From Hemiscyllium ocellatum (Eukaryota), in assembly GCF_020745735.1 (NCBI RefSeq), contig NC_083409.1:9165534-9229533 (forward strand): a stretch of DNA of 64,000 nucleotides. Reading direction: 5' to 3'. Shown here one piece after another: positions 1-56,674 of the stretch. The position numbers and the translations under genes were made by a program. The number at the start of each line of letters is the position of its first letter. Within the stretch, counting starts at the first letter, position 1. The notes under the pieces are model-generated. The model was not told where the DNA came from and did no database searches. It saw nothing but the letters and a program-made list of their open reading frames with translations.

Positions 1-11
1 CAGTCGACCCT

Positions 12-1970
12 TTGGAGGTCACGGCCCAGAGAGTCGTGATCTCCAACGTCCCGCCCTTCATTGCCAGCGAGCTCCTTCTTCCCCACCTCAACACCTTGGG
101 GGAGATCCGGTCAGGTGTTCAACCGCTCCTGCTCGGTCTTAAGGACCCCGCCCTCCGTCACGTATACTCCTTCCGACGCCAGGTATTCATTTGCCTGGCC
201 CGGGAGGAGGTCACAGAGGGCTCTTTCACTGTCCTCCACGAGGGCGCGGCATACCGCGCCTTCTGGACGGCGGACGGCGTGCGGTGCCACCTGTGCCGCG
301 AGGTGGGGCATATTAGAAAAAACTGCCCCACCCAGAAGGCTGCCCAGCCCACACCAACGGCTGCGGGTGGTGCCGCCGCACCCATTCCCCCTCCCCCAAA
401 GCCAACACCACAAGCCCCGGCTCCGGGGGCTAAGCCGGAGGCTCCTAATACCTCAGCCTCTGGCAGGGAGGGGGGTGAGCGTCCGACCGGACAGAAGGTG
501 CCCAGAAAGACGCTACGCGTCAAGCCCGCCCACGGGGAGACCACCCTATCCCCATCCCCTTCCCCTTCCCCTCCACATAACCCACGACCTGCCCCGCCCC
601 GGCACGACAATGCCCCTGCGGCCGTGCCAGCGTCACCCCGGCGCGGGAACCCTGACCCCCGAACCCCCAAACACGTACCTGATCCCGGCCCCACTGACCC
701 CGACCCCAACCCCAACCCCAACCCCAACCCCCACCTCGCTACGGAAACTCCTGGGGCTTCAACCCCTCGTCCGGAAACTGAGCCCCGCCCCACCCAGCCA
801 CCCCCTGGCACTAACCTGGGGGGAACCATCGCTGCTCCACTTCCTGCAGCGACTGTGTCTCTGGGCCCCGGAGAGGGAACTGGGCCCCTGCCCCGCCCGC
901 CATCACCTGATATACCAGGGGCGGGGCAGGAAGTGACACGGCTGACCCTCCCCACCCTGGCCACGACCCCTGCATTCCCCCAGCCAATCATATTCCGGGA
1001 AAGGCGGGGGGGAGGGACCTCGGGCCCCATGATCACCAAGGCGGGCGGGGAGGGGAAGACCCATAAATCCCCCCCTGTCTCTCTGGGGAAGAGGCGCCGG
1101 CCCTTGGAGGGGGGAGAAATCCCATCAGCGCGCCGGCGGCGCTGCCCCTCTCCAGGGGATGAGCCGACGGTGCCCCCCCACTGTCCTGCACCATGGCCCG
1201 ACCTGCCCAAACCCCCAGGGGCGACAGCTGGGCCTTCCACCGCCATAACTCCTCCAGCCCCTGGGGAGGATTTTATTAACAACACGGGCCATGGTGCAGT
1301 CGACAGACTTTTATTCACTGCTGGGTCGTCGAGCGGTGGAGGGGAGGAAGGTGTTATCCTCGCTCCTCCCTCCCAGACTGTTTTTCCGGGGGCCTTGGCC
1401 CTGGGGGAGGACCTTTTCCCCGAGGGGCCGGGCGTCCCGGTGTCGGGAGAGGAGCGGGGCCCCGAGCCTCTGCCGCCCGGCGACCCGAACTCGGGGCGTT
1501 CCGGGAAGGGGTGCGCCGAGGAAGATACGGAAGGTGACCCTGGGGGTGGGGTCACTGGAGGTTTGAGGCCAGTTGGCGGTGCCGGACCAGCCCCCATCCT
1601 CTCGGTGGGGGAGGGGTCGGTGACCGAAGGCGACCTCCCGGAGGAGGGTTCTGGATCGGTGGCGGACACCGGGGACGACGCGGAGTCCGTCTCCAGCGAC
1701 ATTTTCGAGTCCCAGGTGCCCCCCACCGATCTCCCCCTCATCCCCCTCGAGGAACTCCGGGAATTTGTCGAGGAAACTCGGAGTCGCCGGGATAGAGCCC
1801 AACTGGCGCTCGACCGCTGGAGCTCCTTCGAAAGAATCTACTGGTCGGCCCACGCTGCGCGCCAGGCGCCCGGGCTTGACGTCAATGAGCGAAAGCGAGT
1901 CAGGAACTTCCTGGGAGCACTCCTGGTGAGGGCGAGGGACTTCTGTGCCCCTCTCTCGTCCTCCCAGTAA
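12..1970 (+). CDS. Tx1 ORF1 protein (5'-partial): RRM-like N-terminus, CCHC zinc knuckle, long Pro-rich linker
   Basis: VVISNVPPFI...HVYSFRRQVF (typical of Tx1 ORF1) and CHLCREVGHIRKNC (CX2CX4HX4C). Frame is open from the window start; the true ATG is upstream by analogy to 7129. Confidence 0.9.
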   Translation: MEVTAQRVVISNVPPFIASELLLPHLNTLGEIRSGVQPLLLGLKDPALRHVYSFRRQVFICLAREEVTEGSFTVLHEGAAYRAFWTADGVRCHLCREVGHIRKNCPTQKAAQPTPTAAGGAAAPIPPPPKPTPQAPAPGAKPEAPNTSASGREGGERPTGQKVPRKTLRVKPAHGETTLSPSPSPSPPHNPRPAPPRHDNAPAAVPASPRRGNPDPRTPKHVPDPGPTDPDPNPNPNPNPHLATETPGASTPRPETEPRPTQPPPGTNLGGTIAAPLPAATVSLGPGEGTGPLPRPPSPDIPGAGQEVTRLTLPTLATTPAFPQPIIFRERRGGGTSGPMITKAGGEGKTHKSPPVSLGKRRRPLEGGEIPSARRRRCPSPGDEPTVPPHCPAPWPDLPKPPGATAGPSTAITPPAPGEDFINNTGHGAVDRLLFTAGSSSGGGEEGVILAPPSQTVFPGALALGEDLFPEGPGVPVSGEERGPEPLPPGDPNSGRSGKGCAEEDTEGDPGGGVTGGLRPVGGAGPAPILSVGEGSVTEGDLPEEGSGSVADTGDDAESVSSDIFESQVPPTDLPLIPLEELREFVEETRSRRDRAQLALDRWSSFERIYWSAHAARQAPGLDVNERKRVRNFLGALLVRARDFCAPLSSSQ

Positions 1971-2029
1971 ATATGTACATAGCTTTTTTTAACTGTGTGT
2001 ACTGGTGGTGGTTGCACTATACTTTCGAC

Positions 2030-5000
2030 ATGGAGACAACTATAGCTAGCCTCAACATCAACGGCAGCAGGGAGTCACAGCGCAGATTCCAGACCCTCTC
2101 GGTCCTTCGGGACGGGAGGTATGCGGTGTGCTTCCTGCAAGAAACCCACACTACCCCGGGAGACGAAGCCACCTGGCTCCTGGAGTGGCGAGGGGGGGTC
2201 TACATGAGTCACCTCACCCGCAGATCTGGCGGGGTGGCTATCTTGTTGGCCCCGCATTTTCAGCCGGAGATCTTGGGGGTCAGGGAGCCAGTGCCAGGCC
2301 GTTTGCTTCACCTGACGGTTCGGCTGGGGGGCGCGGTGCTTCACTTGGTGAACGTCTACGCTCCCCTGGCCGGGCCGAGGCAAGCGAGCTTCTTCGAAGA
2401 AGTGTCCGCTCATCTCGCTTCCATCGACGAGAACCAGTGCGTTGTCCTCGGGGGAGATTTTAACTGCGTCCTCGAGGACAGGGACCACGGCGGTGCCCGC
2501 ACGAGTTCGACGTCGGGGAGGAGGTTGGGGGACTTGGTCAAGTCCTTGGACCTGGTGGACGTCTGGCGGAATCTCCATCCTGACTCCATCGCCTTCACCT
2601 TCGTGAGGCCTGGGGTCGGAGCGTCCAGAATCGACCGCCTGTACGTTTCGCGGGCGTACGCCTCCTGTTTTCCGAAGGCCTCCACGCGGCAGGTGTCGTG
2701 CACGGACCATCACCTGGTGTGGGCGGAACTCCTTCCGTTCGGCGCCAGGTTGGGCTCCGCGTACTGGCACTTTAACAACCTGCTGCTGGAGGACGAGCGG
2801 TTCCGGGACTCGTTTCGTCGTTTCTGGGCCGGCTGGAGAAGGAAGCGGGGAAGCTTCCCCTCCCTGAGGCTATGGTGGGACGTGGGCAAGGCTCACGTCC
2901 GCGTCTTCTGTCAGGAGTACGCGAGGGGGTCGACGAAGAGGCGGAAATCCAGGATCGGGGAGTTGGAGAGGGAGATGCTCGACCTGGAGTCACGCCTCGG
3001 TCAGCCCGACGCGGACCCGGCCCTGCGCGGGGTGTACGAAGAGAAGAAGGCCGCGCTCCGGGACCTGCAGCTCGTCGGGGCTCGGGGCGCGTACGTGAGG
3101 TCGCGGCTCCAGCTCCTCCAGGACCTGGACCGCGGCTCCCCCTTCTTCTACTCGCTGGAAAAAAGGCGTGGCACCCGTCAGCAGCTCCTTGTGCTGCTGG
3201 CCGACGACGGGTCCCTCGTCTCGGATCCGGAGGGTATCAGGGCCCACGTCCGATCCTATTACACGGCCCTGTTCTCTCCGGATCCGTCCAGCGAGGACGC
3301 TCGCAGAGTTCTGTGGGAGGACCTGCCGCAGCTCAGCCCGGAGGACGCCGGAAGGCTCGACGCTCCCGTCACCTTAGAGGAGCTGACCGGCGCCCTCGAC
3401 CGGCTCTCGCGGGGCAAATCCCCGGGGCTGGACGGGCTGACTGTGGAGTTCTTCAGGGCGTTCTGGGACGTCCTGGGGAGCGACTACGCACAGGTCCTGG
3501 GGGAGTGTCTAAATGCCGGAGAGCTGCCCCTTTCTTGGCGCAGGGCGGTCATCGTCCTGCTGCCAAAGAAGGGGGACCTTCGTTCTTTGAAGAACTGGCG
3601 TCCGGTCTCCCTCCTCAGCACGGACTACAAAATCTTTGCCAGGGTGTTGTCTTCTCGCCTGGCTTCCGTGCTGGCCCACATGATTCACCCGGACCAGTCC
3701 TACACGGTCCCGGGCCGGAGGATACAAGACAACGTCCATCTGGTCCGGGACCTGATCCATTTCTGTCGACGGGCTGGTCTGCCGAGCGCCTTCCTGTCTC
3801 TCGACCAGGAGAAGGCGTTCGACAGGGTCGATCACGAGTACCTGCTCGGGACTCTGCGGGCGTTCGGGTTCGGGACGCAGTTCGTCGCCCGGATCCGACT
3901 TTTGTACGCCGCCGCAGAGTGTCTGGTTAAAGTTAACGGGTCCCTGACGGCGCCCCTTCGCTTCGGGAGAGGAGTGCGTCAAGGCTGCCCCCTGTCCGGC
4001 CAGCTGTATTCCCTGTGCGTGGAGCCTTTCCTGCGCCTCTTGCGGAGGAGGTTGTCGGGGCTGGTTCTGCGCGGCGCGGGCGCGGGGGTGGTCCTCTCGG
4101 CCTACGCCGACGACGTGCTCCTCACTTTCACCGACCCGGCTGACCTGGGGAGGATGCGCGAGTGCCAGGCCGTGTACTCGGCGGCGTCTTCCGCCAGGAT
4201 CAACTGGGCCAAATGTTCCGGGCTACTGGTGGGTCCGTGGCGGGTGGACTCCCTGCCGGAGGAGTTTCGGGGGTTCAGCTGGAGTACCACCCATCTCCTC
4301 TACCTGGGGGTCTACCTCAGCCCGACCGAGGAATCCTGGCCGGCCAACTGGCAGGAGCTGGAGGCCAAAGTCTCGGCTCGCCTAGGCCGCTGGACAGGAC
4401 TGCTCCGAGTGCTATCTTACAGGAGCCGAGTGCTGGTCATAAACCAGCTGGTGGCCGCCATGCTGTGGTACCGGCTGGTCACTTTGGTCCCTCCTCCTGG
4501 CTTTGTCGCTGACATCCAGAGAACGTTGGTCGACTTCTTCTGGGACAAAAAGATGCACTGGGTCGCTGCGCAGGTTCTGAGTCTCCCCATTGAGGAGGGC
4601 GGTCAGTCGCTGGTGTGCGTCCGCACCCAGGTCGCGACCTTCCGCCTTCAGACCTTGCAGCGATACCTTTACGTCGAGCCTCCTCCTAGGTGGTGCGCCC
4701 TGGCGACGTATTTTTTCCGCCAGGTGCGTAACCTCAACTACGACACGCAGCTCCTGTTCGTCGACCGTGACGGTTTGGAGGTCGCCCTCAAGGTGCTGCC
4801 TGTCTTCTACCAGGACCTGATCACTGTCTGGAGCATGGTCGAATCGCGTCGCGCCTACCCTCCGGCAGGAGTAGCGGCTGTCGTCAGGGAGCCGTTGCTC
4901 AGGAATCCGCACCTCCGTGCTCGCGGGTTCGAGTGGCTGTCGGAGGGGAGGGCCGTGGCGGCGAGGGTGACCAGGGTCGGGGACGTGCTGGGTGCCGGGG

Positions 5001-5926
5001 GCCTGGGCTGGACGTTGCCGCAAGACATAGCGAGCAGGGCAGCGGTAGACGTCCGGTACGTGGCCACCGGCATCCGACGCCTTAAAACGGCGGTGCTCGG
5101 ACCCGACGTAGTGCACCAGTTGGAGGACGCTCAGGTGTGCGGTGGGATCCCGTCCGCGCTCACCCCTGCCCGGACGGAATTTCACATTGGCCCCAAGGTC
5201 CCGTACTTCCCGCGGGAGCCTGTGCCCCACAACCTGAGCCGCCTCCGAAATTTTAACTTTGTCCCGTTCAAGGACGTTAAAAGGTGTGTCCTATATCGAC
5301 TGCTGCTGCACACCGTCCACCTCTTCTCCCTCATCCACCGCCCGGACACGCCCTGGCGTGCCCATTTGCCACCGGGCGGTGGGGATCCCCAGTGGAGGGC
5401 TCTCTACGCAGGAGTCCTCCCCCTTTCTCTCGGGGATCTGGGGTGGAGGGTGCTGCACGCAGCAGTCCCCTGCAACCGCAGATTGCGGTGGTTCACGGAC
5501 TCCCAGCCCAACTGCTTGTTCTGTGGCGCTGTGGAGTCCGTGGACCATGTGTATGCTGGGTGTGGGCGTTTGCACTCCCTTTTTGATTTTCTGAAAAACC
5601 TTCTCCTCTGCTTTTGGTTGCACTTCAGTCCCACGCTCCTGATCTTCGGGCACCCGGTGCGGAGGAGGGAGGGCAGGTCTGAAGACCTCCTCGTGGGTCT
5701 GCTCCTGGGCCTGGCCAAACTGGCCATAAACAGGTCCAGGCAGCGGGCCGTGGAGGGGGTCGTTAGGGCCGACTGCCTGCCCCTCTTCCGCGGTTACGTT
5801 AGGGCCCGGGTGTCCTTGGAGAAGGAGCACGCGGTGTCCACCAACACCCTGGAGTTGTTCAGGGAGAGGTGGGCGCCGCAGGGAGTGGAGTGCATCATTT
5901 CCCCCTCCAACTCTATTTTGATTTAG
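2030..5926 (+). CDS. Tx1 ORF2, intact (1298 aa): AP-like endonuclease, reverse transcriptase, C-terminal Zn finger
   Basis: EN motifs LNING, FLQETH, GGDFN, SRIDRLY, TDHHLV. RT motifs KSPGLDG, WRPVSLL, DQEKAFDRV, GVRQGCPLSG, YADD. C-terminal CLFC..ESVDH...C. ATG 2030 (METTIASLNING) chosen; an in-frame ATG also exists at 1973. Confidence 0.95.
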   Translation: METTIASLNINGSRESQRRFQTLSVLRDGRYAVCFLQETHTTPGDEATWLLEWRGGVYMSHLTRRSGGVAILLAPHFQPEILGVREPVPGRLLHLTVRLGGAVLHLVNVYAPLAGPRQASFFEEVSAHLASIDENQCVVLGGDFNCVLEDRDHGGARTSSTSGRRLGDLVKSLDLVDVWRNLHPDSIAFTFVRPGVGASRIDRLYVSRAYASCFPKASTRQVSCTDHHLVWAELLPFGARLGSAYWHFNNLLLEDERFRDSFRRFWAGWRRKRGSFPSLRLWWDVGKAHVRVFCQEYARGSTKRRKSRIGELEREMLDLESRLGQPDADPALRGVYEEKKAALRDLQLVGARGAYVRSRLQLLQDLDRGSPFFYSLEKRRGTRQQLLVLLADDGSLVSDPEGIRAHVRSYYTALFSPDPSSEDARRVLWEDLPQLSPEDAGRLDAPVTLEELTGALDRLSRGKSPGLDGLTVEFFRAFWDVLGSDYAQVLGECLNAGELPLSWRRAVIVLLPKKGDLRSLKNWRPVSLLSTDYKIFARVLSSRLASVLAHMIHPDQSYTVPGRRIQDNVHLVRDLIHFCRRAGLPSAFLSLDQEKAFDRVDHEYLLGTLRAFGFGTQFVARIRLLYAAAECLVKVNGSLTAPLRFGRGVRQGCPLSGQLYSLCVEPFLRLLRRRLSGLVLRGAGAGVVLSAYADDVLLTFTDPADLGRMRECQAVYSAASSARINWAKCSGLLVGPWRVDSLPEEFRGFSWSTTHLLYLGVYLSPTEESWPANWQELEAKVSARLGRWTGLLRVLSYRSRVLVINQLVAAMLWYRLVTLVPPPGFVADIQRTLVDFFWDKKMHWVAAQVLSLPIEEGGQSLVCVRTQVATFRLQTLQRYLYVEPPPRWCALATYFFRQVRNLNYDTQLLFVDRDGLEVALKVLPVFYQDLITVWSMVESRRAYPPAGVAAVVREPLLRNPHLRARGFEWLSEGRAVAARVTRVGDVLGAGGLGWTLPQDIASRAAVDVRYVATGIRRLKTAVLGPDVVHQLEDAQVCGGIPSALTPARTEFHIGPKVPYFPREPVPHNLSRLRNFNFVPFKDVKRCVLYRLLLHTVHLFSLIHRPDTPWRAHLPPGGGDPQWRALYAGVLPLSLGDLGWRVLHAAVPCNRRLRWFTDSQPNCLFCGAVESVDHVYAGCGRLHSLFDFLKNLLLCFWLHFSPTLLIFGHPVRRREGRSEDLLVGLLLGLAKLAINRSRQRAVEGVVRADCLPLFRGYVRARVSLEKEHAVSTNTLELFRERWAPQGVECIISPSNSILI

Positions 5927-5954
5927 TCCCTGCCCTCCCCTTCACTGTTTTGAT

Positions 5955-6297
5955 CACACAGCATTGCCCTTTGATGGGAAGGGCACTGCTCGTCACAGGC
6001 CACTCGGGTGTTTTCCTACTTTTCCTGGTGGTGGAAATTAAATAAAGATTTGTGCACTTATGTCTCTCACTGTGTCTCACAACTACACACACACACACAC
6101 ACACACCATGGGTGCTGGGAAAAAAATAAGCACTACCGCAGTTATGCGGTAGTGTGGGGGTTAATTTAAAAAAAAAGGAAAAAAAAAATACAACCAGGAG
6201 AGGACTGAAGAAAAAAAAAAAAAAAAAGCAAAGTACACAGACAGTATTGCCCTTTGTTGAGAAGGGCACTGCTTGTCACTGGCCACTCGGGTGTTTT
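5955..6297 (+). repeat. Hairpin-bearing target-like repeat: one full unit plus the first ~70 bp of the next unit, between the two Tx1 copies
   Basis: TGCCCTT-N7-AAGGGCA (5965-5985, 6248-6268), AATAAA 6041, (CA)n, CACTACCGCA-GTTA-TGCGGTAGTG (6131-6154), A-rich tail. The next unit starts GCAAAGTACACAGACAG (6228) and is interrupted after GGGTGTTTT (6297). Confidence 0.9.
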
Positions 6298-6479
6298 GCC
6301 TGTTATTTGGGCTGGACCAGTGGCAGTGTGTAGCTGTGCAAGAAGAGGAAGACAGAGAAAAGAAGAGAGAAGAAGGAGGTGGAAGGAGGCGAGAGCTTGG
6401 AGTCCTGGGCCTAGTTTTGGAGCTGCAGCCTGGGCCTTGCCCAGGTCAAGTCAGTGTTGCAGCTGACCTGGGGCCCACA

Positions 6480-7110
6480 CCCACTGCTGGTCTCTGAGAC
6501 CCCACACGGGCCTGCCCCCACCACCGCTGCCTGGGACTTGCCTGAGGCCCCTTCCCACAACCTCCACCACTGGTACGACCTGAGGCCCACCTCCACCGCT
6601 GCTGCCTGGGACTTGCCTGGGAATCCCTCCCCAACAGGTCTGCCTCCACTGCTGGGACCGAGGGCCAGCCTGGGACTTGCCAGAGCCTGCCTCAACTGCT
6701 GCTGTCGCCTGAGGCCTGCCTCCACCACCACTGCCTGAGGCCACTCCCCAACCAAGGGCCTGCCTGGGACTCGACAGAGGCCTGCCTCAACTGCTGTCGC
6801 CTGAGGCCTGCCTCCACCACTGCAGCCTGAGACTCGCCTGAGGCCACTCCCCACAACCTCCACCACTGCTGCGACCCGAGGCCCACCTCCACCGCTGCTG
6901 CCCAGGACTCAATTTTGGGGCTGCCTGGGACTTGTCTTGGGGCCCCCCCAACAGGCCTGCCCCCAACACTGCAATTGAGGGCCTGCCGAGGACTTGCCTG
7001 AGGCCTGCCTACACCACCGCTGCCCAGGACTCGCCTCGGGTGACTGGCCTCGGGCACCTCCCCAAGGACTCCACCGCGACTACTGCCAGAGGCCCACCTC
7101 CACCGCTGCT
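6480..7110 (+). repeat. Degenerate internal subrepeats in the Tx1 5'UTR
   Basis: Recurrent CTGCCTGGGACTTGCC, CTGAGGCC and CCTCCACCGCTGCTGCC motifs; 6535-6610 is repeated at about 6830-6910. Confidence 0.8.
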
Positions 7111-7128
7111 GCCGGGGGCCGACGGAGT

Positions 7129-9399
7129 ATGGCGAGCCCGAAGGTCGCAGGGCCCAGCCGGACCTACGCCGGGGTAGCCGCTGCCTTGGGCTCGGCTGGC
7201 CCAACCCCGGCCGCAACCGCATCCCCCTTCAGGCACCTGACCAAACGCCTGGGGGTCAAGGCCTATCCCCATCCCAACATGACCATCGAGGCCTGCAGTA
7301 AGGCCATGGCTAGTGTGATCGGCCCACTGGCCATCGTCGCTGCGGCCCGCATGTACGGGAAGGCTGTATTCTTTCTTAAGACCGAGCAGGCGGTCCACCT
7401 GGCCGTGGAGAGGGGGCTCACTGTGGGCGGGACATATTTGCCAGTCGACCCTTTGGAGGTCACGGCCCAGAGAGTCGTGATCTCCAACGTCCCGCCCTTC
7501 ATTGCCAGCGAGCTCCTTCTTCCCCACCTCAACACCTTGGGGGAGATCCGGTCAGGTGTTCAACCGCTCCTGCTCGGTCTTAAGGACCCCGCCCTCCGTC
7601 ACGTATACTCCTTCCGACGCCAGGTATTCATTTGCCTGGCCCGGGAGGAGGTCACAGAGGGCTCTTTCACTGTCCTCCACGAGGGCGCGGCATACCGCGC
7701 CTTCTGGACGGCGGACGGCGTGCGGTGCCACCTGTGCCGCGAGGTGGGGCATATTAGAAAAAACTGCCCCACCCAGAAGGCTGCCCAGCCCACACCAACG
7801 GCTGCGGGTGGTGCCGCCGCACCCACTCCCCCTCCCCCAAAGTCAACACCACAAGCCCCGGCACCGGGGGCTAAGCCGGAGGCTCCCAATGCCTCAGCCT
7901 CTGGCAGGGAGGGGGGTGAGCGTCCGACCGAACGGAAGGCGCTCAGGAAGACGCAACGCGTCAAGCCCGCCCACGGGGAGACCACCCTATCCCCATCCCC
8001 TTCCCCTTCCCCTCCACGTAACCCACGACCTGCCCCGCCCCGGCACGATAATGCCCCTGCGGCCGTGCCAGCATCGCCCCGGCGCGGGAACCCTGACCCC
8101 CGAACCCCCAAACACGTACCTGATCCCGGCCCCACTGACCCCGACCCCAACCCCAACCCCGACCCCGTTACAGAAACACCTGAGGCTTCAACCCCTCCTC
8201 CGGAGACCGAGCCCCGCCCCACCCAGACACCCCCTGACACTAACCTGAGGGGAACCACCGCTGCCCTACCACCTCCAGAGACTGATTCTCCTAGCCCTGG
8301 AGAGGGAACTGGGCCCCTGCCCCGCCCGCCATCACCTGATATACCAGGGGCGGGGCAGGAAGGGACATGGCTGACACTCCCCACCCTGGCCACGCCCCCT
8401 GCATTCCCCCAGCCAATCATATTCCGGGAAAGGCGGGGGGGAGGGACCTCGGGCCCCATGACCACCAAGGCGGGCGGGGAGGGGAAGACCCATAAATCCC
8501 CCCCTGTCTCTCTGGGGAAGAGGTGCCGGCCCTTGGAGGGGGGAGAAATCCCATCAGCGCGCCGGCGGCGCTGCCCCTCTCCAGGGGATGAGCCGACGGT
8601 GCCCCCCCACTGTCCTGCACCATGGCCCGACCTGCCCAAACCCCCAGGGGCGACAGCTGGGCCTTCCACCGCCATAACTCCTCCAGCCCCTGGGGAGGAT
8701 TTTATTAACAACACGGGCCATGGTGCAGTCGACAGACTTTTATTCACTGCTGGGTCGTCGAGCGGTGGAGGGGAGGAAGGTGTTATCCTCGCTCCTCCCT
8801 CCCAGACTGTTTTTCCGGGGGCCTTGGCCCTGGGGGAGGACCTTTTCCCCGAGGAGCCGGGCGTCCCGGTGTCGGGAGAGGAGCGGGGCCCCGAGCCTCT
8901 GCCGCCCGGCGACCCGAACTCGGGGCGTTCCGGGAAGGGGTGCGCCGAGGAAGATACGGAAGGTGACCCTGGGGGTGGGGTCACTGGAGGTTTGAGGCCA
9001 GTTGGCGGTGCCGGACCAGCCCCCATCCTCTCGGTGGGGGAGGGGTCGGTGACCGAAGGCGACCTCCCGGAGGAGGGTTCTGGATCGGTGGCGGACACCG
9101 GGGACGACGCGGAGTCCGTCTCCAGCGACATTTTCGAGTCCCAGGTGCCCCCCACCGATCTCCCCCTCATCCCCCTCGAGGAACTCCGGGAATTTGTCGA
9201 GGAAACTCGGAGTCGCCGGGATAGAGCCCAACTGGCGCTCGACCGCTGGAGCTCCTTCGAAAGAGTCTACTGGTCGGCACACGCTGCGCGCCAGGCGCCC
9301 GGGCTTGACGTTAACGAGCGAAAGCGAGTCAGGAACTTCCTGGGAGCACTCCTGGTGAGGGCGAGGGACTTCTGTGCCCCTCTCTCGTCCTCCCAGTAA
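7129..9399 (+). CDS. Tx1 ORF1 protein, full length (756 aa)
   Basis: First ATG in frame is 7129 (MASPKVAG...PFRHLTKRLGVK...IVAAARMYGKAVFFLKT); CCHC knuckle; open to TAA 9399. Confidence 0.9.
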   Translation: MASPKVAGPSRTYAGVAAALGSAGPTPAATASPFRHLTKRLGVKAYPHPNMTIEACSKAMASVIGPLAIVAAARMYGKAVFFLKTEQAVHLAVERGLTVGGTYLPVDPLEVTAQRVVISNVPPFIASELLLPHLNTLGEIRSGVQPLLLGLKDPALRHVYSFRRQVFICLAREEVTEGSFTVLHEGAAYRAFWTADGVRCHLCREVGHIRKNCPTQKAAQPTPTAAGGAAAPTPPPPKSTPQAPAPGAKPEAPNASASGREGGERPTERKALRKTQRVKPAHGETTLSPSPSPSPPRNPRPAPPRHDNAPAAVPASPRRGNPDPRTPKHVPDPGPTDPDPNPNPDPVTETPEASTPPPETEPRPTQTPPDTNLRGTTAALPPPETDSPSPGEGTGPLPRPPSPDIPGAGQEGTWLTLPTLATPPAFPQPIIFRERRGGGTSGPMTTKAGGEGKTHKSPPVSLGKRCRPLEGGEIPSARRRRCPSPGDEPTVPPHCPAPWPDLPKPPGATAGPSTAITPPAPGEDFINNTGHGAVDRLLFTAGSSSGGGEEGVILAPPSQTVFPGALALGEDLFPEEPGVPVSGEERGPEPLPPGDPNSGRSGKGCAEEDTEGDPGGGVTGGLRPVGGAGPAPILSVGEGSVTEGDLPEEGSGSVADTGDDAESVSSDIFESQVPPTDLPLIPLEELREFVEETRSRRDRAQLALDRWSSFERVYWSAHAARQAPGLDVNERKRVRNFLGALLVRARDFCAPLSSSQ

Positions 9400-9456
9400 A
9401 TATGTACATAGTTTTTGTTAACTGTTTACTGGTGGTGGTTGCACTATACTTTCGAC

Positions 9457-12400
9457 ATGGAGACAACTATAGCCAGCCTCAACATCAACGGCAGCAGGGA
9501 GTCACAGCGCAGATTCCAGACCCTCTCGGCCCTTCGGGACGGGAGGTATGCGGTGTGCTTCCTGCAAGAAACCCACACTACCCCGGGAGACGAAGCCACC
9601 TGGCTCCTGGAGTGGCGAGGGGGGGTCTACATGAGTCACCTCACCCGCAGATCTGGCGGGGTGGCTATCTTGTTGGCCCCGCATTTTCAGCCGGAGATCT
9701 TGGGGGTCAGGGAGCCAGTGCCAGGCCGTTTGCTTCACCTGACGGTTCGGCTGGGGGGCGCGGTGCTTCACTTGGTGAACGTCTACGCTCCCCTGGCCGG
9801 GCCGAGGCAAGCGAGCTTCTTTGAAGAAGTGTCCGCTCATCTTGCTTCCATCGACGAGAACCAGTGCGTCGTCCTCGGGGGAGATTTTAACTGCGTCCTC
9901 GAGGACAGGGACCACGGCGGTGCCCGCACGAGTTCGACGTCGGGGAGGAGGTTGGGGGACTTGGTCAAGTCCTTGGACCTGGTGGACGTCTGGCGGAATC
10001 TCCATCCTGACTCCATCGCCTTCACCTTCGTGAGGCCTGGGGTCGGAGCGTCCAGAATCGACCGCCTGTACGTTTCGCGGGCGTACGCCTCCTGCTTTCC
10101 GAAGGCCTCCACGCGGCAGGTGTCGTGCACGGACCATCACCTGGTGTGGGCGGAACTCCTTCCGTTCGGCGCCAGGTTGGGCTCCGCGTACTGGCACTTT
10201 AACAACCTGCTGCTGGAGGACGAGCGGTTCCGGGACTCGTTTCGTCGTTTCTGGGCCGGCTGGAGAAGGAAGCGGGGAAGCTTCCCCTCCCTGAGGCTAT
10301 GGTGGGACGTGGGCAAGGCTCACGTCCGCGTCTTCTGTCAGGAGTATGCGAGGGGGTCGACGAAGAGGCGGAAATCCAGGATCGGGGAGTTGGAGAGGGA
10401 GATGCTCGACCTGGAGTCACGCCTCGGTCAGCCCGACGCGGACCCGGCCCTGCGCGGGGTGTACGAAGAGAAGAAGGCCGCGCTCCGGGACCTGCAGCTC
10501 GTCGGGGCTCGGGGCGCGTACGTGAGGTCGCTGCTCCAGCTCCTCCAGGACCTGGACCGCGGCTCCCCCTTCTTCTACTCGCTGGAAAAAAGGCGTGGCA
10601 CCCGTCAGCAGCTCCTTGTGCTGCTGGCCGACGACGGGTCCCTCGTCTCGGATCCGGAGGGTGTCAGGGCCCACGTCCGGTCCTATTACACGGCCCTGTT
10701 CTCTCCGGATCTGTCCAGCGAGGATGCTCGCAGAGTTCTGTGGGAGGACCTGCCGCAGCGCAGCCCGGAGGACGCCGGAAGGCTCGACGCTCCCGTCACC
10801 TTAGAGGAGCTGACCGGCGCCCTCGACCGGCTCTCGAGGGGTAAATCCCCGGGGCTGGACGGGCTGACTGTGGAGTTCTTCCGGGCGTTCTGGGACGTCC
10901 TGGGGAGCGACTACGCACAGGTCCTGGGGGAGTGTCTAAATGCCGGAGAGCTGCCCCTTTCTTGGCGCAGGGCGGTCATCGTCCTGCTGCCAAAGAAGGG
11001 GGACCTTCGTTCCTTGAAGAACTGGCGTCCGGTCTCCCTCCTCAGCACGGACTACAAAATCTTTGCCAGGGTGTTGTCTTCTCGCCTGGCTTCCGTGCTG
11101 GCCCACATGATTCACCCGGACCAGTCCTACACGGTCCCGGGCTGGAGGATACAAGACAACGTCCATCTGGTCCGGGACCTGATCCATTTCTGTCGACGGG
11201 CTGGTCTGCCGAGCGCCTTCCTGTCTCTCGACCAGGAGAAGGCGTTCGACAGGGTCGATCACGAGTACCTGCTCGGGACTCTGCGGGCGTTCGGGTTCGG
11301 GACGCAGTTCGTCGCCCGGATCCGACTTTTGTACGCCGCCGCAGAGTGTCTTGTTAAAGTTAACGGGTCCCTGACGGCGCCCCTTCGCTTCGGGAGAGGA
11401 GTGCGTCAAGGCTGCCCCCTGTCCGGCCAGCTGTATTCCCTGTGCGTGGGGCCTTTCCTGCGCCTCTTGCAGAGGAGGTTGTCGGGGCTGGTTCTGCGCG
11501 GCGCGGGCGCGGGGGTGGTCCTCTCGGCCTACGCCGACGACGTGCTCCTCACTTTCACCGACCCGGCTGACCTGGGGAGGATGCGCGAGTGCCAGGCCGT
11601 GTACTCGGCGGCGTCTTCCGCCAGGATCAACTGGGCCAAATGTTCCGGGCCACTGGTGGGTCCGTGGCGGGTGGACTCCCTGCCGGAGGAGTTTCGGGGG
11701 TTCAGCTGGAGTACCACCCATCTCCTCTACCTGGGGGTCTACCTCAGCCCGACTGAGGAATCCTGGCCGGCCAACTGGCAGGAGCTGGAGGCCAAAGTCT
11801 CGGCTCGCCTAGGCCGCTGGACAGGACTGCTCCGAGTGCTATCTTACAGGAGCCGAGTGCTGGTCATAAACCAGCTGGTGGCCGCCATGCTGTGGTACCG
11901 GCTGGTCACTTTGGTCCCTCCTCCTGGCTTTGTCGCTGACATCCAGAGAACGTTGGTCGACTTCTTCTGGGACAGAAAGATGCACTGGGTCGCTGCTCAG
12001 GTTCTGAGTCTCCCCATTGAGGAGGGCGGTCAGTCGCTGGTGTGCGTCCGCACCCAGGTCGCGACCTTCCGCCTTCAGACCTTGCAGCGATACATTTACG
12101 TCGAGCCTCCTCCTAGGTGGTGCGCCCTGGTGACGTATTTTTTCCGCCAGGTGCGTAACCTCAACTACGACACACAGCTCCTGTTCGTCGACCGTGACGG
12201 TTTGGAGGTCGCCCTCAAGGTGCTGCCTGTCTTTTACCAGGACCTGATCACTGTCTGGAACATGGTCGAATCGCGTCGCGCCTACCCTCCGGCAGGAGTA
12301 GCGGCTGTCGTCAGGGAGCCGTTGCTCAGGAATCCGCACCTCCGTGCTCGCGGGTTCGAGTGGCTGTCGGAGGGGAGGGCCGTGGCGGCGAGGGTGACCA

Positions 12401-13332
12401 GGGTCGGGGACGTGCTGAGTGCCGGGGGCCTGGGCTGGACGTTGCCGCAAGGCATAGCAGCGGTACGTGGTCACCGGCATCCGACGCCTTAAAACGGCGG
12501 TGCTCGGACCCGACGTAGTGCACCAGTTGGAGGACGCTCAGGTGTGCGGTGGGATCCCGTCCGCGCTCACCCCTGCCCGGACGGAATTTCACATCGGCCC
12601 CAAGGTCCCGTACTTCCCGCGGGAGCCTGTGCCCCACAACCTGAGCCGCCTCCGAAATTTTAACTTTGTCCCGTTCAAGGACGTTAAAAGGTGTGTCCTA
12701 TATCGACTGCTGCTGCACACCGTCCACCTCTTCTCCCTCATCCACCGCCCGGACACGCCCTGGCGTGCCCATTTGCCACCGGGCGGTGGGGATCCCCAGT
12801 GGAGGGCCCTCTACGTAGGAGTCCTCCCCCTTTCTCTCGGGGATCTGGGGTGGAGGGTGTTGCACGCAGCAGTCCCCTGCAACCGCAGATTGCGGTGGTT
12901 CACGGACTCCCAGCCCAACTGCTTGTTCTGTGGCGCTGTGGAGTCCGTGGACCATGTGTATGTTGGGTGTGGGCGTTTGCACTCCTTTTTGATTTTCTGA
13001 AAAACCTTCTCCTCTGCTTTTGGTTGCACTTCAGTCCCACGCTCCTGATCTTCGGGCACCCAGTGCGGAGGAGGGAGGGCAGGTCTGAAGACCTCCTCGT
13101 GGGTCTGCTCCTGGGCCTGGCCAAACTGGCCATAAACAGGTCCAGGCAGCGGGCCGTGGAGGGGGTCGTTAGGGCCGACTGCCTGCCCCTCTTCCGCGGT
13201 TACGTTAGGGCCCGGGTGTCCTTGGAGAAGGAGCACGCGGTGTCCACCAACACCCTGGAGTTGTTCAGGGAGAGGTGGGCGCCGCAGGGAGTGGAGTGCA
13301 TCATTTCCCCCTCCAACTCTATTTTGATTTAG
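9457..13332 (+). pseudogene. Tx1 ORF2 of copy 2, frameshifted
   Basis: Versus copy 1: 9-bp and 11-bp deletions near 12458-12465 (stop at 12492) and a 1-bp deletion near 12985. Total 21 bp, matching the offset change 7427 to 7406. Confidence 0.92.
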
Positions 13333-13360
13333 TCCCTGCCCTCCCCTTCACTGTTTTGAT

Positions 13361-14229
13361 CACACAGCATTGCCCTTTGATGTGAAGGGCACTGCTCGTC
13401 ACAGGCCACTCGGGTGTTTTCCTACTTTTCCTGGTGGTGGAAATTAAATAAAGATTTGTGCACTTTATGTCTCTCACTGTGTCTCACAGCTGCACACACA
13501 CACCATGGGTGCTGGGGTTAAAAATAATAAGCACTACCGCAGTTAGGCGGTAGTGTGGGGGTTAATATTAAAAAAAATAAAAAAAATGCAAAGTACACAG
13601 ACAGTATTGCCCTTTGATCAGAAGGGCATTGCTTGTCACTGGCCACCCGGGTGCTTTCCTATCTTCCTGCTGGTGGAAATTGAATAAAGATCCATGCACC
13701 TTGTGTCTCTCACTGTGTCTGACAACTGCACACACACACTATGGGTGCTGAGGATAAAAAATAAGCACTACCGCAGTTAGGCGGTAGTGTGGGGATTAAT
13801 TAAAAATAAATTTAAAAAAGAAAAAAGAAGAAACAAAAAAGATAAACAGGAGTATTTCACTGTGTCTCACACCTGCACACACACCATGGGTGCTTGGAAA
13901 AAAAATGTAAAAATGATTTTAAAAATTAAAAAAAATCCAAAGTACACAGACAGTATTGCCCTTTGATGTGAAGGGCATTGCTTGTCACTGGCCACTCGGG
14001 TGTTTCCTTTCTTCCTAGTGGTGGAAACTGAATAAAGATTCATGCACCTTGTGTATTTCACCTTGTCTCACGCCTGCATACAGACAACATGGGTGCTGTG
14101 GAAAAAATCAGCACTACCGCAAAAGAAAAAAAAGAAATAAAAAGAAAAAACACTAGGATTTTTCACTTGCTCTCACACATGCATACACACAACATGGGTG
14201 CTGGGGAAAAAAATGTCCAAAATACACCA
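13361..14229 (+). repeat. Tandem array of the hairpin-bearing repeat (3 long and 2 short units)
   Basis: Units at about 13361-13587, 13588-13850, 13851-13936 (short), 13937-14150 and 14151-14229 (short). Shared motifs: AAAGTACACAGACAG, TGCCCTT/AAGGGCA, AATAAA, CATGGGTGCT, GCACTACCGC, A-rich ends. Confidence 0.92.
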
Positions 14230-14254
14230 AGACAGAGACCCAATATTCTTTATC

Positions 14255-14260
14255 TTTATT
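14255..14260 (-). terminator. Poly(A) signal of IgL C1
   Basis: AATAAA on the - strand ~530 nt after the stop; same position in the C2 and C3 3'UTRs. Confidence 0.75.
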
Positions 14261-14785
14261 TGCTTTTCCAGATTGACATTTACAGAAAACAGTCAGCAAT
14301 TAACAGCCCAGATAGAGGAAGATGCACAAATTCACAGCCACATTGGAGCTTGAGGAAAACACTTGTGGAGATTTTCTCAATAACATGAGAATCCTGTCCC
14401 TTTAAACAGTGACAGAACCTTAAATTGGAACTGATGACTGAGCAGGAAGGAGATATGTTTACTGAAGCAGAGACTTCTGAGGTTCACATTGTTTTTCCAC
14501 AGCTGACAGTCTTCAGCATCATCGAGAGGTTTGACTTGGCATCATAAGATAACCCTGTCCCTATCACACGCACCCAGAACCAGACAGCATACGGTTTGAC
14601 ACAGCATAAAGGTCTCTCTATACTATTGCAACAATCTGTCTTAACTATTGAAACTCAGACGTTGCCCCGAACAGCCCTGAGACGGAAGAGAGTTGAAATT
14701 CAGTGCTGACAATGACCTTTGTCCTGCCAGCTCGGCCCTGTTCTATTTTAAAGTTGTGTCTCCTCTGTGGACTGTCTCGAACCCT

Positions 14786-15114
14786 TTACACACATTCTGA
14801 TCTCCTGATGCTCTTGCTGAGGGGAGAGGGGAGGGTCCCATGGGTGAGGGCACAGGAGAAGCAAGCGTTGGACTCCCAGTCAGACCCAGAGAGAGTCAGC
14901 AGGCTGCTGCCACTGTAGGAACTGCCCGATGTTCGCAGATAGTTACTGGTCTGAACCCCGTCCGAAATGACTGCACCGTCCTTCTTCCACTGCACCTCCA
15001 GCTCATTGGGACATAAGTGATTGGCAAGGCACACCAGGGTGGCAGTGCCTTTGGCATTGACCTGTTCCGGGGAGGGAGGCAGCAAGGTCAGCTTGAGCTG
15101 AGAGTTCTCATGGC
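14786..15114 (-). CDS. Ig light-chain constant exon C1, type I/NS5 (sigma-cart)-like; open but degenerate
   Basis: Acceptor ttctcttgtctttcAG|GC (phase 1), 329 bp. C1-set Ig fold: TATLVCLAN, W of VQWKKDG, YSGSSLLTL, FSCALTH, terminal SECV*. Conserved FYPD is replaced by LCPN. Isotype assigned from recalled similarity, not from a search. Confidence 0.85.
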
Positions 15115-16139: not shown

Positions 16140-16450
16140 AGATTTGGTTTAGATTAGATTACTTACAGTGTGGAAACAGGCCCTTCGGCCCAACAAGTCC
16201 ACATCGACCCGCTGAAGCACGACCCACCCATACCCCTACATTTACCCAATTACTACGGGCAATTTAGCATGGCCAATTCACCCGGCCCGCACATCTTGGA
16301 CTGTGGGAGGAAACCAGAGCACCCGGAGGAAACCCACGCAGACATGGGGAGAAGTGCAAACTCCACACAGTCTGTCGCCTGAGTTGGGAATTGAACCCGG
16401 GTCTCAGGCGCTGTGAGGCAGCAGTGCTAACCACTGTGCCACCGTGCCGC
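16140..16450 (-). mobile_element. HE1/V-SINE-type tRNA-derived SINE
   Basis: - strand GGCACGGTGGCACAGTGGTTAGCACTGCTGCCTCACAGCGCC..GGTTCAATTCC (A/B boxes), V-domain TGTGTGGAGTTTGCAC..GGGTTTCCTCCGGGTGCTC, (TCTAA)n tail. Confidence 0.9.
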
Positions 16451-34788: not shown

Positions 34789-35029
34789 GATGAAGAAGAT
34801 TCAGTCTCTGTGTCTGTGTGCTTTGGAGATTGACCATTCCATTTAGCTGATTGGCTGAATTTCAGCATGGCATTGTCACAATTGGCTAATTGGCCTGTCA
34901 ATCAATGGCACATCCATTGTAGAGGATACTGACAGCCAATCATCAATCACATTCAAATGAGCCCTTTGATCTGGAATCATTGGAGGTTACAAGATTCGAA
35001 ACAGATCTCCATTAATGACCACCTGGACC

Positions 35030-55212: not shown

Positions 55213-56674
55213 TCTAATCTCTTCAGGGGCCAGGATGGGTGTGAGGAGATTGGGCTTTGATGGAACTACCCACAGAATGAAGTCAAAAGAAGCAAAGCAA
55301 GAAAGGCAAGTGGATCGAATACAAGAGAGCAAATTGTGAGGGAAAACCAATTATTCCCAGTTTAGCAATTACAAAGGAGAGAGTGACAACATTGAATTGC
55401 TTCTGGTGTCATCCTCTGTGCCCTAACATTTCACAGTGCCAGTTCCACGTCCATCCATTGGCTTTGTCATTGAGAATCAACAGTTCCCTTCCCACAGCCC
55501 TTTTTAAAAAGTCCTGTATCAGAGAAGCAGAGAATATTTCACCATTTCTGGGAAAGATAGAGGAATATAGGATGTCAAGGAGCAGTTTCTCTGTCTGACA
55601 GAAGGATGTGTGTAGTCTGTTGATTCTGGAGACGGATCACTGATTCCTCACTCCCATCAACACCTGACTTTATTCTAACAACAGTTTCTATTATTCATTA
55701 TAAAGTACCCCCACCAGTTTCAGACTAGACATTTCACACCCAGCCCCCATTTCCTCACATTGGAATCAAGAACCAAACTTGCCCCATCTCAGGATTGCCC
55801 TCTGAATGTGGTGTCAGTGTGCTAATGCTGTGTTTGATGAACGAGCCATGGTGGAATCTGGGACTGAATCCAAGGGGTTTCTGAGCCAGCCAGCAGCCTC
55901 CCCACTGTGTGAGGGTCTGTTTGGATGAGATTTCAGCCCCATGGTTCCCACTGATACTAGAGCCATGGAGCGAGATTGCTGGAGCCACATGTGGACTGAG
56001 GAACACAACAGTCAGGACAATGAGCTGCTCTGGAATCCACCCTGAGCCCTGGGTGATCCTCACTGAGATGCCCAGGAGCTACAGAATATGACAGCAGAAG
56101 GTTTATCATTGATGGTCCTCCCCAGCCGTGACTCCCAGATGCCCCCGGATTGGACATTCTCAATCTGACCCCATGGACCCACGGGGCAATTCCATCCCAT
56201 TTGAAGAGGAAAGAAAACCCTGGTCTAATTTATGGAATATTTATTTCTCAAACCCTGTAGAATTGTTATTCTGAGAAACAAGATCCTGCTGATCATATTC
56301 ATAAATACAGAATTCCCAATGGCTCTGGCTCACAAACAGTTGAGTTGAATTTCTTGGCCTGGGATCTTGCTGTGACTAAGAGATGGGTGAAGGAATTTCC
56401 ATCAGATTATTGTGTTTCCCAGTGTCCCTTCCTATTTTTCTCCATTTATTGGGAAATAATTCCTTGGGGCCCTGCATTCCTTCTGAAAGAACCCCTTCTG
56501 GACGCAGTTGTAGAATTGCCCTCCTACTCCAGGGACCTCATTACCCCCTCGATTCTCCCCCTCTTGTTCCAGGCCTTGAAGTTGGAGGTTAACACTTCAC
56601 ACACCTTTCCCTGAGGTTTCAGCTCTGGCCATTTCCAAAGCACACACAGAGACAGAGACTGAATCTTCTTCATC

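Follow-up and report, generated by a model that had tools for sequence, protein, structure and literature searches.

The Tx1L element of Xenopus laevis inserts at a defined sequence rather than at random, using a site inside the DNA transposon Tx1D (PMC1950540). In crocodilians, serial insertions of SINEU-3 and Tx1-Mar into the same target sandwich a target-site duplication of ∼16 bp, which gives rise to apparent tandem repeats; short non-coding partners are mobilized there by Tx1, and 5' extensions are acquired via template jump or 5' transduction (Kojima 2015, PMC4494074). The Drosophila elements HeT-A and TART form telomeric arrays, with "promoting in tandem" and perfect non-terminal repeats (PMC5537684). 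For R1Bm and SART1, PMC7265360, citing Anzai 2005, describes downstream target sequence carried on the template RNA that anneals to the nicked site, leading to precise initiation. How does a shark locus with two head-to-tail LINEs compare with these systems? In the window, which is the whole 64-kb stretch of DNA that we analyzed, we put the probability at roughly 0.7 that the region is a stack, built up by four or more separate target-primed insertions of one very abundant Tx1 family at the same 17- to 20-bp site in the flank of an immunoglobulin (Ig) kappa gene. The features on which this reading is built are listed in Table 1.

Table 1. Features of the LINE stack and of the Ig kappa landing sites in the window.
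Feature	Position	Strand	Description and basis
Tx1-clade LINE copy 1	1..5926	+	Cut by window start; ORF list, Pfam, database match
Copy 1 ORF1	3-1970	+	Partial, open
Copy 1 ORF2	1973-5926	+	Intact, 1317 aa; Tx1-homologous start ATG at 2030
Copy 1 3'UTR/tail	5927..6227	+	Alignments, folds, contigs of four organisms
Copy 1 tail, proximal part	5927-6057	+	Hairpin 1, GGGTGTTTT, AATAAA
Copy 1 tail, block X	6058-6126	+	Contains (AC)n run
Copy 1 tail, hairpin 2 block	6127-6168	+	Fold
Copy 1 tail, distal part	6169-6227	+	A-rich stretch, weakly target-like motif (6186-6210), A17 run
Target-site duplication copy GCAAAGTACACAGACAG	6228..6244	+	Between copy 1 and copy 2 entity; 17/17 identical to 13588-13604
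53-nt head	6245..6297	+	Copy of 3'UTR equivalent to 5962-6014 (hairpin 1 through GGGTGTTTT)
Tx1-clade LINE copy 2	6298..13332	+	ORF list, alignment to copy 1
Copy 2 5'UTR	6298-7128	+	Internal 92-nt tandem repeat
Copy 2 ORF1	7129-9399	+	Open, 756 aa
Copy 2 ORF2	ATG 9457 to stop 13332	+	Broken relative to copy 1
Copy 2 3'UTR/tail	13333..13587	+	Ends A8-T-A8-T
Target-site duplication copy GCAAAGTACACAGACAG	13588..13604	+	Between copy 2 and unit C
Tail-only unit C	13605..13936	+	Whole tail plus second X-like block, A-rich end; alignments
Target-site duplication copy CCAAAGTACACAGACAG	13937..13953	+	Between units C and D
Tail-only unit D	13954..14215	+	Most decayed; hairpin 2 deleted; alignments
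Native landing site of kappa gene K1, TCCAAAATACACCAAGACAG	14216..14235	+	Alignment to K2/K3 flanks
K1 poly(A) signal AATAAA	14255..14260	-	Minus-strand read; flank conserved in K2 and K3
Ig kappa constant exon K1 (C1-set)	14789..15112	-	Pfam C1-set 2e-18; convergent with LINE stack
Unoccupied single-copy landing site, kappa C gene K3 (inverted)	34808..34827	-	Pattern search, alignment
Unoccupied single-copy landing site, kappa C gene K2	56634..56655	+	Pattern search, alignment

Judged from their coding sequence, both full-length copies are genuine members of the Tx1 clade of LINEs (L1 superfamily), as the first-pass annotation of this DNA had claimed. Pfam matches place an N-terminal APE-type endonuclease in ORF2 (Exo_endo_phos, residues 25-232, 3.6e-13), followed by a reverse transcriptase (RVT_1, residues 531-780, 1.4e-36), together with a zf-RVT match (3.4e-4). 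The best match of ORF2 among 5.8 billion proteins was the Xenopus Tx1 149-kDa protein (1401 bits, 52% identity, 98% coverage), and the endonuclease domain by itself was 46% identical to that of Tx1. A zf-CCHC match in ORF1 scored 18.1 bits, below the Pfam cut-off of 20.8. Copy 2 is 97.6% identical to copy 1, relative to which its ORF2 is broken by the loss of 20 nt near 12460 and of 1 nt near 12983. A tblastn search of the 64-kb window found no further copies of the element.

The repeat unit surrounding the two copies had been taken for an independent host repeat that the 3' end of the element mimics. Our data show that this unit is the LINE family's own 3'UTR, ∼250 to 300 nt long, with two conserved hairpins, an internal AATAAA (6043-6048 in copy 1), and an A-rich end. 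Both hairpins were present in the MFE and centroid folds of the tail. Sequence homologous to the units starts ∼34 nt past the ORF2 stops of both copies (5926 and 13332), close to the ∼30 nt first noted. The tails had been described as lacking a poly(A) end; in fact, they run for ∼255 to 300 nt and then finish in A-runs (A17 at 6211-6227 in copy 1 and A8-T-A8-T at 13570-13587 in copy 2), with the 17-mer directly after. In contigs of four shark organisms, the ORF2 3' end was continuous with the tail, with counts in the thousands; for two organisms, 12,657 and 10,394 contigs were placed on 5300-7300, numbers that come from Logan contigs of low-coverage runs with 6075-6239 masked and in which depth does not equal copy number. 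Coverage of this interval was dense at the ORF2 3' end, the tail, and 6238-6304 and sparse over the 5'UTR. Contigs of organism C covered 5889-5970, 5927-5996, and 5967-6039. Some joints attached the ORF2 end to tail variants of the "free-unit" type, and past 6057 most copies went on into the same X block. The LINE family appears to be very abundant and mostly 5'-truncated. Within the window, units were found nowhere outside the stack, and an Rfam search of 5800-14400 gave no match to an RNA family; snRNA, tRNA, and 5S genes are thereby rejected as the target.

What, then, is the target? The units at 6228, 13588, and 13937 do open as first described, with (G/C)CAAAGTACACAGACAG, but the target that was thought unrecognizable lies next door: by sequence comparison, GCAAAGTACACAGACAG, the head of the unit, does not belong to a satellite; it represents a target-site duplication of native kappa-gene flank and matches the stretch immediately beyond the poly(A) signal of the neighboring Ig kappa C gene. 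The native K1 site is located 20-39 nt downstream of the kappa AATAAA on the minus strand, and the LINE is antisense to the kappa gene. Across the window, the 17-mer pattern occurred at the three unit heads and at the native K2 and K3 sites only (0.07 expected); with 0.07 to 0.16 chance matches expected, this confinement to the expected places is not due to chance. Only one of the three kappa sites in the window (K1) is occupied, a point against serial insertion at this flank; the paralogous K2 and K3 sites are empty. No homology between the unit body and the kappa flank was detected past the 17-mer on either strand, and similarity at AATAAAGAT was marginal. Because the family looks too abundant for Ig light-chain flanks alone, the kappa flank may be one among many sites, or the site of one subfamily.

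The stack consists of at least four co-oriented entities arranged head to tail, two full-length and two tail-only, each with the 17-mer around it; its left end lies beyond the window. The segment from 6245 to 13587 is flanked by a perfect 17/17 duplication and forms one insertion unit. Units C and D and the 53-nt head all share exactly one starting nucleotide, and unit C is 86% identical to the copy 2 tail. The X block of unit D is only 78% identical to those of the other tails, and next to the native site this unit has a second X-like block. These data uphold one half of the array growth proposed earlier, namely, recurrent insertion at the same site and in the same orientation with regeneration of the landing site; the regeneration, however, goes through the 17-bp target-site duplication rather than through a mimic.

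The 53-nt head is joined directly to the 5'UTR of copy 2 and is identical to the element tails at 49/54 positions, so that 3' sequence is also found on the 5' side (6245-6297 versus 5962-6014). In agreement with the first-pass annotation, the unique 5'UTR of copy 2 begins at 6298, immediately after GGCCACTCGGGTGTTTT (6281-6297), and comparison of the 5'UTR start with the tail past GGGTGTTTT revealed no homology beyond 6297. A 246-nt contig of organism B covers the junction (6261-6505). Three variants in the head match units C and D and not the element tails. A metagenome scan with the 17-mer GGCCACTCGGGTGTTTT returned 25 contigs, all unrelated and none matching the element. We lean slightly toward the view that copy 2 brought the head along, part of its 3'UTR being duplicated at its 5' terminus. 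An LTR-like terminal redundancy, which had been offered as an alternative for this locus, is a live reading of the head, and a copy 2 that seamlessly entered a preexisting tail-only unit at GGGTGTTTT would give an identical stack.

Could unequal crossing-over or segmental duplication have multiplied, in place, a single chance insertion made without site preference? The units do lie in tandem and in one orientation, and the two-block architecture common to C and D means that these could be old duplicates of each other. The full-length copies speak against it: their ORF2 sequences differ at 23 synonymous and 20 nonsynonymous sites (pN/pS 0.30, p = 7.6e-5), their ORF1 linkers have diverged by 7% versus 1.1% elsewhere (p = 7e-15), and neither the ratio nor the hot segment is compatible with neutral decay of duplicates. 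In addition, the tails of copies 1 and 2 have different 3' end points. Purifying selection on the ORF2 differences and strongly uneven divergence along the copies show that copies 1 and 2 are independent insertions from different selected lineages; a simple tandem duplication of one insertion, the test set by the first-pass annotation, is thus rejected for this pair. For the locus as a whole, we consider amplification in place the least probable of the readings. Only a little less improbable is the original model, in which the target is a host tandem repeat of ∼350 bp and a LINE without a poly(A) of its own carries a 105-nt mimic that templates integration and rebuilds the site. The comparison of the tails fits this model in part. 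Their first 131 nt, reaching ∼15 nt past the AATAAA, are identical at 130/131 positions (one difference, where two had been counted) and share variants absent from units C and D; identity then drops to 56/59 plus indels and 39/42, and a canonical AATAAA with a GU-rich stretch is present there. The rise in distal divergence is real, but a marker of the RNA 3' end is not needed to explain it, since 6/101 is within what neutral divergence between the lineages allows (ORF pS 2.3-3.5%). Moreover, the supposed repeat is continuous with ORF2 3' ends in four organisms and runs into block X in most copies, "free-unit" variants also sit on ORF2-attached tails, units in the window are confined to the stack, their heads duplicate the kappa flank, and both tails end in an A-run.

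A third explanation retains the mechanism of the original model, with the element's own tail in place of the host repeat: full-length elements would home to their own family's 3'UTR, entering immediately after GGGTGTTTT. The nicked target would pair with the homologous stretch of the incoming RNA, leaving a seamless 3' junction. In that case, a tail-only unit B would have been split, the head being what is left of it on one side and its right half forming part of the copy 2 "tail." Such nested insertion would account for the sharp 6297/6298 junction, with homology absent beyond it, and on the T at 6245 and GCTTGTCACTGG, which are common to the head and units C and D and not found in the element tails, it fits equally well. 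A contig of another organism contains this junction as well, depth across the junction in organism A is not zero, and Tx1L itself targets one site within another transposon (PMC1950540). However, nested insertion requires two specificities: units B, C, and D would have used the kappa 17-mer, and the full-length copies GGGTGTTTT. The variants CCTACTTTTCC and TTAAATAAAGATTTG, located past the site, stay linked to the element in both independent copies as well as in contigs of organism C, which implies that at least 43 nt past the supposed junction are element derived. Most contigs over GGGTGTTTT simply go on as tail, and the 17-mers around the head plus copy 2 are identical, as one young event predicts. 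We regard nested insertion as unlikely, although it deserves more weight than the two preceding explanations.

Under our preferred reading, serial insertion at the kappa flank, the element endonuclease would nick the bottom strand at the left border of the 17-mer, and the A-rich RNA end would serve as the starting point for reverse transcription. A staggered second cut would then duplicate the 17-mer. Because every insertion would leave a fresh 17-mer next to the native left flank, the stack would grow leftwards, making unit D the oldest and most decayed entity and copy 1 the youngest and intact one; a C-to-G variant of the 17-mer is common to the two leftmost visible copies. Units C and D would have arisen either by 5' truncation, with the joint made through ACAG microhomology to the target, or as head-plus-tail deletion derivatives. 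A bolder proposal, which we consider doubtful, is that this shark Tx1 lineage has two linked adaptations to life in stacks: homing to light-chain flanks and an R-like 5' copy of the 3'UTR hairpin region. The homing target may be the 17- to 20-bp GU-rich stretch that directly follows the cleavage site in Ig light-chain genes, a multicopy "safe harbor" outside the mRNA. By analogy with retroviral strand transfer, the R-like 53-nt 5' copy on the full-length RNA may let reverse transcriptase transfer between copies, giving rise to head-plus-tail mini-units. Read-through RNAs ending in target sequence might aid priming at the site, and repeated nicking could account for the loss of homology among the three kappa clusters precisely at the nick.

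What looked like a self-templated target mimic becomes testable as a Tx1 LINE that reuses a short site rebuilt by its own target-site duplication. If the preference for light-chain flanks holds genome-wide, it would be the first case of a Tx1 target linked to a multicopy family of protein-coding genes, and nicks would recur exactly at the borders of shark light-chain clusters, which could bear on cluster duplication and inversion. The 3'UTR-derived head on full-length copies would be a small but tangible example of a non-LTR element with terminal redundancy. The behavior itself would be the known site preference of Tx1 at a new address, and Tx1 stacks that sandwich a target-site duplication have already been published (PMC4494074).

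Like Tx1L, the shark element has two ORFs, with an APE-type endonuclease, a reverse transcriptase, and a C-terminal zinc-binding region in ORF2. The target of Tx1L is the Tx1D site, whereas the documented site of the shark element is an Ig kappa gene flank; the apparent abundance and frequent 5' truncation of the shark family, and the 3'UTR-derived head before its 5'UTR, also set it apart from Tx1L. The crocodilian insertions resemble the shark stack in that successive copies occupy one target with the duplication sandwiched between them. Their target, however, is a Mariner transposon, whereas the shark stack mixes full-length LINEs with tail-only units and its site adjoins a functional-looking multicopy immune gene. 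The first-pass annotation had invoked an RNA 3' end of the kind described for R1Bm and SART1. The copy 1 tail has a weakly target-like motif of 23-27 nt before its final A-run, and 6186-6210 resembles the site plus flank (p about 0.01-0.06 by shuffling); the equivalent stretches of units C and D gave no significant motif in the same kind of test. The copy 1 motif is marginal, A17 lies between it and the junction, and the large "mimic" is the element's own 3'UTR. The locus shares with HeT-A and TART a co-oriented, head-to-tail array of LINEs and an LTR-like redundancy, with 3' sequence also present on the 5' side. In HeT-A, this redundant sequence is the very 3' terminus of the neighboring element upstream, acquired by contiguous read-through. 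The shark head, which contains no distal tail, A-run, or 17-mer, instead comes from within the 3'UTR, is 53 nt long, and adjoins the 5'UTR directly; its chromosomal site is internal and was generated by an endonuclease.

The DNA opens within a LINE, and the first of two full-length-type copies (copy 1) occupies the window from base 1 up to its ORF2 stop. ORF2 encodes an APE-type endonuclease, a reverse transcriptase (RT) and a zf-RVT region. Searched against 5.8 billion proteins, ORF2 matched the 149-kDa Tx1 protein of Xenopus best, with 52% identity across 98% of its length, and the endonuclease domain is 46% identical to its Xenopus Tx1 counterpart. These identities uphold the Tx1 assignment of the first-pass annotation. 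The element represents a new Tx1-clade member. In the 5'UTR of copy 2 lies a 92-nt internal tandem repeat (1.9 copies, 6657-6831) within a broader GC-rich set of 75- to 105-nt repeats (6485-7120). The 5'UTR seems to be different upstream of about 6512 in two other organisms (C and E) whose Logan contigs were compared.

Features of the LINE copies and the Ig kappa constant genes (window coordinates)
Feature	Position	Strand	Remark
Copy 1 ORF1			truncated by window start; partial, open
Copy 1 ORF2	stop 5926		intact, 1317 aa
Copy 2 5'UTR	6298-7128		
Copy 2 ORF1	7129-9399		open
Copy 2 ORF2	9457-13332		frame broken by 20-nt and 1-nt deletions relative to copy 1
K1 Ig C1-set domain	14789-15112	minus	2e-18
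K1 AATAAA in 3'UTR	14260-14255	minus	after C1-set exon
Other two kappa C genes (K2, K3)	about 56.6-57.6 kb, 33.9-34.8 kb		flanks 87% identical to K1 flank

The LINE stack and the kappa gene beside it (K1) are convergent. The order is copy 1 with its tail, a 17-mer, a 53-nt head with copy 2 and its tail, a 17-mer, the tail-only unit C, a 17-mer, the tail-only unit D, the native site and the kappa gene. In 3/3 kappa genes, a sequence resembling the unit head (the 17-mer that starts each unit) was located 20-39 nt beyond the AATAAA: TCCAAAGCACACAGACAC in K3, a close variant in K2 and TCCAAAATACACCAAGACAG at 14216-14235 in K1. A search of the window for CCAAAGYACACAGACA with ≤2 mismatches returned only the three unit heads and the K2 and K3 sites (0.07 matches expected). 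Because K2 and K3 each carry a single copy of the site, they represent empty sites. Elsewhere in the unit, no resemblance to the kappa flank was found. This sequence evidence identifies the unit head as a duplicated target site from the Ig kappa flank. A short interspersed repeat of a type characteristic of shark genomes was also observed at 16140-16450, 1 kb past the kappa C exon.

The coordinates and motifs reported in the first-pass annotation were correct on rereading of the sequence. Homology to the "units" at 13588 and 13937 begins ∼34 nt after both stop codons, and the 70 nt ahead of the copy 2 5'UTR (6228-6297) resemble the beginning of a unit. The annotation had taken the element's 3' end for a target mimic of a separate host repeat. 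Logan contigs from four runs, each of a different organism, aligned to window positions 5300-7300, revealed instead that the repeat is the element's own 3'UTR, as evidenced by links between the ORF2 end and the tail. In organism C, this link is made by a chain of contigs (5889-5970, 5927-5996 and 5967-6039). At some contig joints, ORF2-end sequence is attached to tails with the "free-unit" variants, which are thus subfamily marks rather than a separate repeat. Where contigs stop aligning (6057/6059), their onward sequence is the block that the window also has there; therefore, the family tail extends beyond the internal AATAAA. Coverage (12,657 and 10,394 aligned contigs in two organisms, qualitative only, since contig depth is not copy number and the runs were of low coverage in a second search) climbs toward the ORF2 3' end, is high on the tail and at 6238-6304, and is sparse across the 5'UTR. 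Such a profile is expected of a LINE family that is abundant and mostly truncated at the 5' end. The rest of the 64-kb window held no further unit copies, and an Rfam search gave no match. Three contigs of organism C, a related organism, share the ORF2 end and then carry an unrelated 3'UTR from 5931, five bases past the stop codon, which hints at exchange of 3'UTR modules between Tx1 subfamilies.

Contrary to the earlier claim that neither copy ends in poly(A), A-runs were found at 6211-6227 (A17) and 13570-13587 (A8-T-A8-T), some 255-300 nt past the stop. The tail folds into two hairpins kept in all copies. Their stems (5961-5990 and 6128-6154) are constant and their loops variable (GATGGG, GATGTG, GTTGAG and GATCAG), a pattern that fits 3'UTR recognition by the element's RT. 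After the first A-rich end, units C (13840-13936) and D (14150-14215) contain a second block (TTTCACTGTGTCTCAC...CATGGGTGCTGG plus an A-run) like the one at 6058-6126 in the copy 1 tail. Each unit is in effect a dimer, which may have arisen by stacking of a mini-unit or by read-through. Between an A-rich stretch and the final A17 of the copy 1 tail, a 23- to 27-nt motif (6186-6210) resembles the landing site together with the sequence downstream of it (shuffling gave p = 0.01-0.06). This weak lead could reflect 3' transduction from a source element at a paralogous site.

Could the two copies be a simple tandem duplication of one insertion, as the first-pass annotation had considered? They are 97.6% identical, with differences very unevenly spread: divergence is about 1.1% across most of the body and rises to 7% within 500 nt of proline-rich ORF1 sequence (p = 7e-15). 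ORF2 carries 23 synonymous and 20 nonsynonymous differences (pN/pS 0.30; binomial p = 7.6e-5). Much of the divergence therefore predates insertion and arose under selection in active lineages, which rules out a local duplication and makes the two copies independent insertions. Such divergence also explains the tails, which match at 130/131 positions in the first 131 nt and then at 56/59 and 39/42, with several indels. By these counts, the proximal tail is constrained (1/131 differences) and the distal tail (6/101) is within neutral lineage divergence (pS 2.3-3.5%). The proline-rich linker itself (501-1000 versus 7940-8430) has a pS of about 0.10 and a 12-nt indel, suggesting a fast-evolving or recombinant segment.

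The 53-nt head in front of copy 2 (6245-6297) is identical to the copy 1 tail (5962-6014) at 49/54 positions, with a sharp stop at GGGTGTTTT. If copy 2 had inserted seamlessly within a tail-only unit, the result would look just like arrival of the head with copy 2, and this nested reading is favored by three variants that the head has in common with units C and D. We favor the reading that the head came with copy 2, either as terminal redundancy or as a 5' extension of the heritable type described by Kojima. A perfect 17/17 duplication lies on both sides of head, copy 2 and tail, and the tail-only units share their first nucleotide with the head. The head/5'UTR junction is crossed by a 246-nt contig from another organism, and contig depth persists there in organism A.

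The A-run of each entity touches the left edge of a 17-mer, which would place the priming nick at that edge; a staggered second cut would then duplicate the 17-mer. Decay is greatest in unit D and intermediate in unit C; copy 2 carries frame-breaking deletions, and copy 1 is intact. The two leftmost visible copies of the 17-mer have a first-base G variant in common. Both gradients fit a model in which new elements would enter at the 17-mer copy still adjoining the native left flank. Homology among the kappa clusters ends precisely at the 17-mer left edge (14216 in K1, 56634 in K2 and 34827 in K3), and in the 4 kb past it K2 and K3 are mutually unrelated. The putative LINE nick site is also where the light-chain clusters (one is inverted) have their borders.

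Known Tx1 families target transposons, LTR elements, microsatellites, satellites and small RNA genes, and the element described here behaves like other site-preferring members. The stack growth proposed here is already published for Tx1-mobilized elements, whose tandem insertions enclose a 16-bp duplication (PMC4494074). The family looks far too abundant for light-chain flanks to be its sole targets. Two features may be new: the insertion address directly downstream of Ig light-chain constant genes, and the 5' head derived from the 3'UTR.
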